NCBI RefSeq assembly: GCF_000315625.1
Contig: NW_005434617.1
Coordinates: 241,757-305,756 of the forward strand
Reading direction: 5' to 3'
DNA: 64,000 nt
Source of the DNA: Guillardia theta CCMP2712
Lineage: Eukaryota; Protista; Cryptophyta
The notes below the pieces were generated by a model. It saw only the letters and a list, made by a program, of their open reading frames with translations, did not search any database and was not told the DNA's origin. Shown here in pieces: positions 44,976-49,003 of this stretch (the stretch's first letter is position 1; every line of letters begins with the position of its first letter). The translations under genes and the position numbers were made by a program.

Positions 44976-47180
44976 ATGACTACAAGATATCGCATCCCCT
45001 CCTCGGCCTACCCGGTCCCCCCTGCCTCTATCCATTCCACAAATCCTCTCCATCCGCCATCTGACAAGCCGAACAATATCATCGAGCACACCAAGAAAGA
45101 TGCAACTGGCAGGGTCTCCGTCAAGAAGTATCTCAAGGGAGCTCTCCTGGGGAAGGGAGGCTTCGCAAAATGCTTCCAAGTGACCGACCTGGACACGAAG
45201 GAGGACTGGGCTTGCAAGATCATCCAAAAGTCCTCGCTGACCAAGCAGAGACACAAGCAGAAGTTGCAGTCGGAGATCAAGATCCACAAGTCCCTCAGCC
45301 ACAAGAACATCGTTAGGTTCCATGATGTGTTCGAGGACAAGGAGAATGTCTACATCGTCATGGAACTGTGCCCTAACCAGACGATGCTCGAGCACGTGAA
45401 GCGCAGGAAGCGGCTGTCAGAATCTGACACCAGACGGTTCATGCTTCAGATCCTGGACGCTGTTCGCTTCATGCACCAGTACAGAGTGATCCATCGAGAC
45501 CTGAAGTTGGGGAACTTCTTCCTGGGCAAGAACAATGAGGTCAAGATCGGGGACTTCGGGCTCGCCTGCAAGCTGCAGTTTGACGGGGAGAGAAAGAAGA
45601 CTCTGTGCGGCACCCCCAACTACATCGCACCTGAGGTGCTGGACGGGAAGGACGGCCACAGCTACGAGGTTGACATCTGGAGCATTGGCGTCATCCTGTA
45701 CACCTGCCTGGTGGGCAAGCCTCCCTTCGAGACGGCTGACGTGAAGTCGACATACAAGCTGATCCAGTCAAACACGTACTCGTTCCCTCCTCGGCTGGAG
45801 ATCAGCGAGTCAGCCAAGGCGCTTGTGAGGTCGATCCTGCAGTCGAGGCCAGAGAAGAGGCCGTCGATCGAGGACATCATGAGGGACGACTTCTTCCTCG
45901 GGCAGGGGATCGCGCTGCTGCAGGGCAGGGACGACCCGCTGAACACAAGCGGGAACAACAGCGGGAACCGAGGGAAGCTCAAGGACGCCCTGATCTTCTC
46001 CAGCTCGTCCAACACTGCTCCAACCGATGCCCGCGCGCCCCTCCAGCCCGTGCAGGAGGTGAAGAACGTGGAGCAGGACAAGAACAAGAAGGTCAGGGCG
46101 GACGGAGCCCCGTTGGGCCTGGCATCCTGCAACATAGAGAGGAAGCCGATGACTATCCTGTCTGGCCTGTCGTCGGTTGGGAACATCTATCGGCCGATGC
46201 TGCAACAGCAGGTTGCCGGGGAGGATATGCAGAGGAACAGCGACAGGGACTCGGAGTCGTCACCCACCAAGAAAGTGACGAAGCAGATGGGAGCGCTGGA
46301 TGTCAAGGACAAGACCAACTTTCTCCTCCCGACTTCCTCCTCCTCCTCCTCCTCCGATCCAGCCACTACCATTCAACGGAAGGCCTCCGACTGCGGGTCG
46401 GACGCGGCATCCTCTGCATCCACAGCCAGCGCGCCTGTCTCGGCGAGGTCGGACAAGGATGTCCCGGTGGCATCGGCCGCCGTTGAGGACGAGCATGCGA
46501 TGAGGAACATGCACAACAACATCACTGCAGCCCTGAGCTCGGCGGTCAAGGGGTCGTCGTCGTACGTGGGGACCCTGCCGCTGCCCCAGGTGTGGGTGAG
46601 CAGCTGGGTGGACTACTCGAAGAAGTATGGGCTGGGGTACAAGCTGAGCAACGATCAGTACGGAGTGTTTTTTAACGACTCGACCAAGATCCTGCTGCAG
46701 TTGGACGGGAGCTCGTTCGAGTACATGGAGAGGCAAAGAATGGACGGGAACAACGTCAAGTTTGACAAGCGATCGAGCTACACGATGGGTGAGCGGCCTG
46801 CAGAGCTGAACAAGAAGGTGACGCTGCTGGGGCACTTCAAGAACTACCTCAACGACTCGAGCAAGGTAGAAGGAGGAGACAAGGGGAAGGAGGCCTTCGA
46901 CCGGAGCAACGTGGCGAAGGAGACAGAGGATGGAATCTACGTGAGGAAGTGGATGAGGACGAGGCACTCGGTCATCTTCCGCCTCAGCAACAACTGCTTC
47001 CAGATCTCCTTCAACGACGACTCTGAAGTCTTCCTGTGGGCCTCCAGGAGGTGGGTCACGTACCGGAGTAGGACGAAGCCGCTGCGCACGATGGACCTCA
47101 AGGATGCGGCATGCGATGCCGACATTGCCAAGAGGCTCAAGTACGCGGATGACATCCTGGTGCAGCTGCTGGCGGCCTGA
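44976..47180 (+). CDS. PLK1: Polo-like kinase (734 aa, intronless)
   Basis: LGKGGFAKC, HRDLKLGN, IGDFGLA, KKTLCGTPNYIAPE kinase motifs; polo boxes WVSSWVDYSKKYGLGY...GVFFNDSTK and YVRKWMRTRHSVIFRLSN...QISFND. Confidence 0.97.
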   Translation: MTTRYRIPSSAYPVPPASIHSTNPLHPPSDKPNNIIEHTKKDATGRVSVKKYLKGALLGKGGFAKCFQVTDLDTKEDWACKIIQKSSLTKQRHKQKLQSEIKIHKSLSHKNIVRFHDVFEDKENVYIVMELCPNQTMLEHVKRRKRLSESDTRRFMLQILDAVRFMHQYRVIHRDLKLGNFFLGKNNEVKIGDFGLACKLQFDGERKKTLCGTPNYIAPEVLDGKDGHSYEVDIWSIGVILYTCLVGKPPFETADVKSTYKLIQSNTYSFPPRLEISESAKALVRSILQSRPEKRPSIEDIMRDDFFLGQGIALLQGRDDPLNTSGNNSGNRGKLKDALIFSSSSNTAPTDARAPLQPVQEVKNVEQDKNKKVRADGAPLGLASCNIERKPMTILSGLSSVGNIYRPMLQQQVAGEDMQRNSDRDSESSPTKKVTKQMGALDVKDKTNFLLPTSSSSSSSDPATTIQRKASDCGSDAASSASTASAPVSARSDKDVPVASAAVEDEHAMRNMHNNITAALSSAVKGSSSYVGTLPLPQVWVSSWVDYSKKYGLGYKLSNDQYGVFFNDSTKILLQLDGSSFEYMERQRMDGNNVKFDKRSSYTMGERPAELNKKVTLLGHFKNYLNDSSKVEGGDKGKEAFDRSNVAKETEDGIYVRKWMRTRHSVIFRLSNNCFQISFNDDSEVFLWASRRWVTYRSRTKPLRTMDLKDAACDADIAKRLKYADDILVQLLAA

Positions 47181-47407: not shown

Positions 47408-48434
47408 TCAGGAGATGCTGAGAAGTTCTACTTCAAAGATGAGAGTGCTGTTAGGAGGGATCTCAGGAGGCGATCCTCGTTTGCCGTAACCCAACCTGCC
47501 ATGACGTATCAAGCCCACATCCCTGCTCTCCCCTCCTCCTCAACCCCTCCCGCATGTCTTCCCCTCCTCCCTCCTATCCTCCCCCTCGCCTTCCTCCACT
47601 CCTCTCGCCTCCTCCTCCTCCCTGCCCTCCTCCTCCTCCTCTCCTCCCATGCACCAACTTTGGAGGGATGGTGAGCTTGCGTTTGCCCCCTTTCTTCATG
47701 CCCTTCACGCCTCGGTCCCATCCCTTGATCACTTCCCCGGCATCGATCGTGAACTTGAACCGGCTCGACGCGTCAAACTGTGTCCCGTCCTCCAACCTCC
47801 CCACGTACTTCATCGTTACCGTGTCCTGCGACTCTGCAGTCTTTCCTTCCCCCACCTTCATGTCCTCCACCACCATCTTCTCTTCCTCAGGCTCCTCATA
47901 CTCCTCCCCAGGAATACTGTAGCTGCTCTTGTTCTGCACGAGCTTCCCGTTTGCCACGGCCTTCTTCAGCACCTTGAGGACAAGAGTGTTGTTGTCCACT
48001 CCTGTGCTTGCTTTCACAAACTTCTTGATGTACACGAGGCTGCTGCCGCTGCCGATTGGAAGTCAACTCAAAAGAAGATCTGCTCCGGATATGGCACTCC
48101 CATTTCCATCATCAAAACCATCATCACCATCATCACCATCATCACCATCATCACCATCATCACCATCATCACCATCATCACCATCATCACCATCATCACC
48201 CTCTCAATCTCAATCTCAATGTACATCTCCATCTACATCTCCATCTACACATACTTCTACATCTACATCTACATCTACATCTACATCTACATCTACATCT
48301 ACATCTGCATCTACATCTACATCTACATCTACATCTACATCTACATCTACATCTACATCTACATCATCTCACCTCTTCTTCTTCTCTTCTCTGATCGCTC
48401 GCTTGATCGTTTCCAGCAAATCCTCCTTAGCCAT
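47408..48434 (-). CDS. Linker histone H1 globular (H15) domain fused to an FKBP-type PPIase; join(48373-48434,47659-48048,47408-47495), 179 aa
   Basis: Spliced product [66 protein letters not shown], then VEDMKVGEG...[16 protein letters not shown]...[52 protein letters not shown]; both introns GT-AG and in phase. Confidence 0.88.
48106..48362. repeat. Intronic (CACCATCAT)n and (CATCTA)n arrays
   Basis: Direct observation, within intron 1 of the H1-FKBP gene. Confidence 0.95.
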
Positions 48435-48825
48435 TATCCCGACGACCTCAGCCAACCCCACCCCTACCCCCTCTTTTTCCTTCAGACACCACCCACATTT
48501 ATACTTCAAACTCACCCCCCAAGAACAGCCCAAGGACCCACCCCACAGAGATAAGGCCTTGCAAGGACCTTTTATCAGCATGCAGATAGCAAGGGAACAG
48601 ATGGGAACAAGTGCGAGAGAGGAGGAGGAGAGGAGGAGAGGAGGAAGAAGAAGGGGACAAGAGAAGGAAGAGGACAAGGAGGAGGAGGAGGAGATGAGGA
48701 GGAGGAGGAGGAGAGGAGAAGCAGGAGAAGCAGGGGGGGGCGGGGGAGGAGAGGAGAAGAGGAGGACGAAGACCAGGAGGGGAGCAGAGGAGGACGAGGA
48801 CGAGGACGAGGACGAGGAGGACGAG

Positions 48826-48861
<36 letters not shown>

Positions 48862-49003
48862 GATGAGGACGAGGGGTGCTTGAAAGGAAGGCGAGCTTCC
48901 TTGTGGAGTACCAAAGATTGGGAAGGAGGAAAGGAGAGATCGTCCTGCCGCAGACACCCTTGAACGGATCCCCTGACTTGACATGCTTGTCTCTCACCCC
49001 AAT

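Follow-up and report, generated by a model that had tools for sequence, protein, structure and literature searches.

The gene at positions 47408-48434 on the minus strand of a 64,000-nucleotide stretch of the Guillardia theta CCMP2712 genome (the window; all positions refer to it unless a contig is named), a cryptophyte alga, encodes a linker-histone globular domain (H15/GH1) joined to an FKBP12-like prolyl isomerase domain. The fusion, here called H15-FKBP, is real; the gene is expressed, and other lineages conserve the same architecture. It represents a genuine conserved family, apparently uncharacterized, that is common to many marine protists. A function as a chromatin-tethered isomerase is plausible. 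To our knowledge, the isomerization of prolines in histone tails is among the least understood of chromatin controls, with most of what is known coming from yeast Fpr4 and several FKBPs of the NPL or BTHB type. By coupling the nucleosome-recognizing domain of H1 to an FKBP, H15-FKBP would constitute a natural reagent for asking how a prolyl isomerase (PPIase) acts when kept at the nucleosome entry/exit site, next to the H3 tail. This question is testable, since marine algae of ecological dominance conserve the family and the diatoms among them are transformable.

Results

Structure of the H15-FKBP gene

The H15-FKBP gene begins with an ATG at 48434-48432, ends with a TGA stop codon at 47410-47408, and contains three exons whose 540-nt coding sequence specifies a product of 179 aa; the span of 47408-48434 given in an earlier sequence-only reading of this DNA matches these ends exactly. 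Exon 1 (48373..48434, minus strand, as for all parts of the gene) comprises the ATG, 20 codons, and 2 nt, encodes helix 1 of the H15 domain, terminates at the donor AG/GTGAGA (the slash marks the exon end), and aligns with the N-termini of the full-length homologues. Intron 1 (48049..48372; 324 nt, GT..AG, phase 2) is skipped in a transcript contig of public run X1. Nearly all of this intron is microsatellite, with (CAT/CATCAC)n followed by (CATCTA)n at 48100-48365, and a long (GAG/GAC)n tract lies upstream of the gene at 48620-48870. Exon 2 (47659..48048; 390 nt) has an open frame throughout and encodes, in order, the rest of the H15/GH1 domain (47907..48048; helices 2 and 3 and a short beta-hairpin wing), a 10-residue acidic linker with a net charge of -6 (47877..47906), and the first ~72 residues of the FKBP domain, VIKGW...KLTIPP, plus 2 nt (47659..47876). 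Intron 2 (47496..47658; 163 nt, GT..AG, phase 2) is followed by exon 3 (47408..47495), which supplies the last 28 FKBP residues and the TGA; the C-terminus is identical to that of the deposited protein P0002 and is conserved in all homologues. Non-canonical borders for intron 2 (GT..TG or GA..AG) were considered and dropped because a 5-nt repeat, GTTGG, at both borders permits GT..AG. With the canonical placement, exon 2 ends in ...CCAAA and exon 3 begins with GTTGGG, in agreement with the transcript contig and P0002, and the exon 2/exon 3 junction reads ...TIPPKLGYGKRG..., which agrees with the join in the deposited model. The product is laid out as an H15/GH1 domain of ~68 aa, the acidic linker, and the C-terminal FKBP12-like domain. 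The absence of a Lys-rich H1 tail, pointed out in the sequence-only reading, is evident from this layout, in which the winged helix gives way to the 10-residue acidic stretch and then to the FKBP.

Domain tests were run exon by exon, and P0002 (exons 2b-3) together with P0001, the closest full-length homologue, served as stand-ins for the 179-aa product. When translated alone, exon 2 matched positions 20-63 of the 74-position Pfam Linker_histone profile with 25.4 bits (cut-off 22.4) and FKBP_C with 81.8 bits (cut-off 21.1). In the genome scan, exon 3 matched FKBP_C with 28.5 bits at profile positions 66-94. Since both matches pass their cut-offs within exon 2, the fusion cannot be an artifact of the splice model, just as the sequence-only reading had maintained. 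Its accompanying statement, that the H15 domain runs into a complete FKBP within a single exon, holds for the domain junction, which lies inside exon 2, and fails for the completeness of the FKBP: the last 28 residues, with GYG, IPP, and LIFEV, are encoded in exon 3 behind the 163-nt intron. The H15 motif I..AI...K (helix 1) had been assigned to the same exon as well and is actually found in exon 1, behind the 324-nt intron.

Transcript evidence and deposited annotation

A 489-nt transcript contig from run X1 spans 47466-47490, 47654-48050, and 48393-48441, and it joins all three exons in spliced form at the modeled junctions; 18 nt of the contig are unplaced, being inside a masked repeat. It joins 47654 to 47490, equal to the modeled intron 2 within the 5-nt ambiguity. 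The X1 contigs reach 47466; beyond that point, the final 58 nt of coding sequence (47408-47465) have indirect support from the deposited model, the FKBP_C profile match, and conservation. About half of the sampled words of the locus were present in runs from at least three studies, which matches the expectation for a spliced mRNA. One 77-nt X1 contig departs from the gene at 47466, and the alternative 3' exon or paralogue that it might have signified was rejected. This contig consists of 30 nt of exon 3 (47466-47495) and 47 nt antisense to an unrelated, coiled-coil-like locus (C40:38519-38548), the two loci have CTCC alone in common at the joint, and we take it to be a chimeric cDNA or contig. 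The RNA of run X18 is 3'-tag-like (60-nt reads, 6% sampled), covers only the 3' end of a neighboring polo-kinase gene, and is uninformative for H15-FKBP. The polo-like kinase is encoded on the plus strand by a single 734-aa open reading frame (44976-47180) with a Pkinase match of 253 bits and two POLO boxes. Its 3'-tag reads place a poly(A) site at ~47267. The H15-FKBP gene is convergent with it and has its stop codon only ~140 nt from this site, so the 3' UTRs of the two genes are either very short or overlapping.

The best database match to the gene is P0002 itself, a Guillardia theta CCMP2712 protein of 101 aa that carries the annotation of an FKBP-type isomerase. P0002 begins at an internal Met (MVVEDMKVG...) and includes the FKBP domain only, without the H15 part. 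Truncation of the deposited model to the FKBP hides the fusion from proteome-based surveys, and those that rely on the deposited Guillardia proteome miss the sole H15 domain detected in our genome scans. The FKBP-only form of the deposited model is also the one observation that favors an artifact, by which two neighboring genes, a mis-assembly, or a chance open reading frame would have produced the apparent fusion. Opposed to this are the presence of both domains within one uninterrupted exon, the spliced transcript contig covering all exons, and more than 60 independent transcriptome or genome sequences from other lineages that share the architecture and the length. The exon, transcript, and family evidence has already refuted the artifact, to which we assign a negligible chance.

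The H15 domain and its predicted DNA contacts

The H15 signature that had been recognized at the N-terminus was borne out by the Pfam match, a family profile, and the predicted fold. When the family H15 profile, derived from 30 N-termini, was compared with the PDB, the globular domains of H1.0/H5 were matched with E values of 6e-14 to 1e-10, and weaker matches were obtained to yeast Hho1, the KAT6B WH domain, and HP1BP3. PF00538 was matched by all 30 of the family N-termini tested (best E 2e-16), and it scored 29.3 bits at the Guillardia locus in the six-frame genome scan. For the structural tests, P0001 (61% identity to exon 2) stood in for the Guillardia protein. The AF2 model of its H15 domain (pLDDT 88.7; helices 3-13, 22-33, and 38-51, strands 55-57 and 60-62) superposed on H1.0, H1.4, and H5 from chromatosome structures with TM scores of 0.89-0.92 and rmsd values of 1.0-1.5 Å. 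The WH domains of KAT6A/KAT6B and SAMD1 are also among the structural neighbors of the domain.

The residues that contact DNA were mapped by HMMER alignment to H1.0. Lys or Arg occupies the positions equivalent to H1.0 R47, K52, K69, K73, and R94 in 93, 100, 90, 80, and 77% of the family, respectively. The Guillardia protein possesses Leu, Lys, Leu, Lys, Lys, and Ser at the equivalents of R47, K52, K69, K73, K85, and R94, with a Lys situated one position past the K69 equivalent. Three contact residues are lost both from this protein and from its nearest relative, P0001, the pair having Leu, Leu, and Ser/Met at the R47, K69, and R94 equivalents. The beta-hairpin wing is shorter than that of H1/H5 throughout the family, and the K97 equivalent is missing in all members. 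On the basis of the lost R47, K69, and R94 equivalents, the short wing, and the missing K97, canonical on-dyad binding is not assured for the family, and it is least assured for the Guillardia copy. The Guillardia H15 domain as a whole is strongly basic, with 15 Lys/Arg versus 6 Asp/Glu and a net charge of approximately +9.

The FKBP domain

P0002 matched solved FKBPs with E values of ~1e-29, scoring 97.6 bits with AtFKBP53 and 80.9 bits with Fpr4, and it exhibited no specific closeness to the nuclear class of FKBPs. In the genome scan, the FKBP_C match is located at C57:289390-289599, which corresponds to window positions 47634-47843. The full-length model of P0001 (pLDDT 89.5, pTM 0.62), in which the relative placement of the two domains is uncertain, superposed on FKBP12, FKBP53, and the FK1 domain of FKBP52 with rmsd values of 2.2-2.8 Å; outside the 80s loop, its lowest pLDDT is in the linker. 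We took the pocket of FKBP12 to be formed by Y26, F36, D37, F46, E54, V55, I56, W59, Y82, I91, and F99, with this numbering being our assumption. The Guillardia exons encode equivalents of all 11 residues, in accord with the earlier claim that the typical active-site residues are kept, and each of them except E54, which is retained in a majority only, shows at least 90% conservation in a 30-protein alignment. The Guillardia domain differs from FKBP12 in having Ser for H87, Glu for I90, and a 40s loop that is three residues shorter. We conclude that the domain is FKBP12-like, with a prolyl-isomerase pocket predicted to be intact.

Distribution and origin of the family

An architecture search with an assessment of taxonomic spread had been suggested in the sequence-only reading, and when carried out it returned more than 60 proteins with Linker_histone and FKBP_C across several lineages. 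A word search yielded ~35 proteins of 166-227 aa in which both domains were precomputed, and a further search, with scoring restricted to the H15 part, yielded ~25 more. Besides the cryptophyte Guillardia, the fusion is carried by diatoms (Nitzschia inconspicua, Cylindrotheca closterium, Leptocylindrus danicus, and a Bacillariaceae MAG), the bolidophyte Triparma eleuthera, the green alga Pyramimonas sp. CCMP2087, Picozoa sp. COSAG06, and the loricate choanoflagellates Stephanoeca diplocostata and Bicosta minor. In the ESM Atlas, both domains occur together in at least three large clusters of 73-100 members each, whose commonest taxa are Chlorophyta and Bacillariophyta. Several hundred such sequences are present in public databases and are labeled only as peptidyl-prolyl isomerase; the architecture is unremarked there and is not unique to Guillardia. 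The earlier reading had also raised the question of whether this architecture was already characterized, and full-text searches of the literature brought up no paper on an H15-FKBP fusion or family. The acidic linker is weakly conserved across the family.

When 144 FKBP domains were placed in a tree, all 64 from fusion proteins, together with 5 from truncated fragments, formed one clade versus 75 FKBP-only sequences (SH-aLRT 98), which points to a single origin by one fusion event. The tree of the fusion proteins unites the diatoms in one clade and pairs Guillardia with an MMETSP transcript that shares 61% identity with exon 2; its deeper branches lack resolution, and the two choanoflagellates are not grouped together. 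Candidate H15-only relatives (P0148, P0154, P0155, P0158, and P0159) were rejected as free H1s, being fusion-family gene calls that read into introns. The FKBP-only rows within the fusion clade were likewise discounted, being fragments of 103-111 aa that begin in the linker.

Related domains in the Guillardia genome

The 87-Mb assembly was scanned in six frames with Pfam profiles and the family H15 profile, and the resulting counts are lower bounds. Neither PF00538 nor the family profile revealed a second H15 domain in these scans, as both matched this locus only. The NPL domain was detected at two loci, L007 1435-2766 (contig C15) and C22:527640-527807, and BTHB was detected at one (C1, ~1326742-1326915). 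The recovery of these short NPL and BTHB domains indicates that the scan is able to find domains of this size. The BTHB match has an unusual setting, a 648-aa open frame (L008 1027-2973) that also contains F5/8-type C, MIB_HERC2, and ZZ domains. No NPL-FKBP or BTHB-FKBP combination was present among the 46 FKBP_C matches in the genome; FKBP_C was found neither on the NPL contigs, C22 and C15 (none within ~1.5 kb of either NPL domain), nor near the BTHB locus. Because the NPL contigs have no FKBP_C match, Guillardia seems to be without an NPL-FKBP of the Fpr3/Fpr4 type. On this evidence, Guillardia would possess neither an Fpr4-type nor an FKBP25-type gene, and H15-FKBP appears to be the only FKBP found beside a recognized chromatin- or DNA-binding domain in the Guillardia scans. 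Linker histone genes were not found in nucleomorphs (Marinov and Lynch, PMC4822330).

Discussion

The explanation that best accommodates these results is a real, expressed, nuclear two-domain gene, belonging to a family that arose by one fusion event, in which the H15 domain would anchor the FKBP at chromatin; taken together, including the mechanism that we infer, we consider this explanation reasonably probable. Through its winged helix, the protein would dock on DNA or on nucleosomal linker or dyad DNA, and, because no Lys-rich tail is present, it would do so without condensing the chromatin. The short linker would then keep the FKBP within a few nanometers of the docking site, where it could act as an isomerase or a chaperone on segments of chromatin proteins that contain proline. 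Candidate substrates are histone tails, by analogy with the action of yeast Fpr4 on H3, or H1-like proteins. The more specific proposal of the sequence-only reading, a dyad-targeted isomerase acting on the prolines of histone tails, is one that we can only infer, and the Guillardia copy is without the R47, K69, and R94 equivalents. The loss of these three contact residues leaves room for roles at plain DNA or in the nucleolus.

Such roles are at the center of another explanation, in which the H15 domain anchors the protein to nucleic acids in general, for example to rDNA, to AT-rich or distorted DNA, or to RNA, and the protein is mainly a chaperone in the nucleolus or in ribosome biogenesis instead of an enzyme directed to the dyad and the histone tails. 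Nucleolar or ribosome-biogenesis chaperoning has been reported for FKBP25 and Fpr3/Fpr4, and FKBP25, in which a DNA-binding helical BTHB domain is connected by a linker to the FKBP, resembles H15-FKBP in layout. The absence of three nucleosome-contact basic residues in Guillardia, the short wing of the family, and the occurrence of the plain-DNA binders KAT6A/KAT6B WH and SAMD1 WH among the structural neighbors are all consistent with a general anchor. However, the H15 sequence is nearer to H1.0/H5 than to the KAT6 WH domain (E of 6e-14 versus 1e-7), and the basic residues of GH1 sites 1 and 2 are kept in most members of the family; we regard a general anchor as less probable than chromatin tethering. 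Still less probable, in our estimation, is that the protein serves chiefly as a chaperone of histones or H1 or as a competitor of H1, with the GH1 domain taking H1 sites or binding partner proteins, with the FKBP and acidic linker providing a non-catalytic surface, and with isomerization being irrelevant. AtFKBP53 and Fpr4 chaperone histones independently of catalysis, an acidic linker is present in H15-FKBP, and the genome scans disclosed no second H15 domain, as might suit such a protein. The acidic stretch, however, is just 10 residues long and weakly conserved, whereas the catalytic pocket is at least 90% conserved over distant lineages, which argues that the pocket is in use.

A broader proposal extends the chromatin-tethered isomerase to the history of the family. 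H15-FKBP may be the only protein with a linker-histone fold in Guillardia, where NPL- and BTHB-FKBPs would be absent, and it may descend from an ancient chromatin factor of single origin that is widespread in eukaryotes and lost in all model organisms. This factor would bring a prolyl isomerase to the position that H1 occupies on the nucleosome and might, in some lineages, be the sole nucleosome binder of the GH1 type. We offer this proposal tentatively and doubt that it is correct in its entirety.

Comparison with known systems

H15-FKBP and the nuclear FKBPs Fpr3/Fpr4, S. pombe and Drosophila FKBP39, and Arabidopsis FKBP53 have in common a C-terminal domain of the FKBP12 type and, ahead of it, acidic residues and an N-terminal module directed to chromatin. 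In H15-FKBP this module is an H15 winged helix, monomeric and predicted to bind DNA, whereas that of the NPL proteins is a pentameric, histone-binding nucleoplasmin fold; in contrast to those proteins, H15-FKBP has neither a long acidic/basic region nor a Pfam NPL match. FKBP25 (FKBP3) belongs to the same size class and has the same arrangement, in which a short flexible linker connects a small, basic, helical domain for nucleic-acid binding to the FKBP at the C-terminus, but its N-terminal fold is a basic tilted helix bundle, and H15-FKBP, with its H15 winged helix, has no BTHB match. The sequence-only reading had called this a design distinct from that of the known nuclear FKBPs, and the absence of NPL and BTHB Pfam matches in the protein supports that view. 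The orthogroups tabulated in the supplement of Grau-Bove et al. (bioRxiv 10.1101/2021.11.30.470311) agree with it: among them, the combination of NPL and FKBP_C denotes Fpr3/Fpr4/Fkbp39, Linker_histone occurs alone, with PHD/MYST, with Myb, and in an SNF2 group, and no Linker_histone group has FKBP_C in its consensus architecture.

In comparison to the linker histones H1, H5, and H1.0, the globular domain of H15-FKBP has the same fold and a clearly homologous sequence, and most of the basic residues that contact DNA are kept family-wide. H15-FKBP does not exhibit the tripartite structure of H1, with its long Lys-rich C-terminal tail; it is without an N-terminal tail too, and an enzyme domain stands in the place of the C-terminal one. 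Precedents for H15 as a targeting module fused to an enzyme or to a different DNA-binding domain, with architectures that appear in the table of Grau-Bove et al., are provided by the WH1-MYST arrangement of KAT6A/KAT6B, plant GH1-Myb/TRB and GH1-HMGA proteins, HP1BP3, SHPRH, and SNF2 proteins with Linker_histone, and none of these non-histone proteins contains a prolyl isomerase. The closest working analogy is to FKBP25, with H15 replacing BTHB; in function, the nearest precedent is Fpr4, which isomerizes prolines in the H3 tail.
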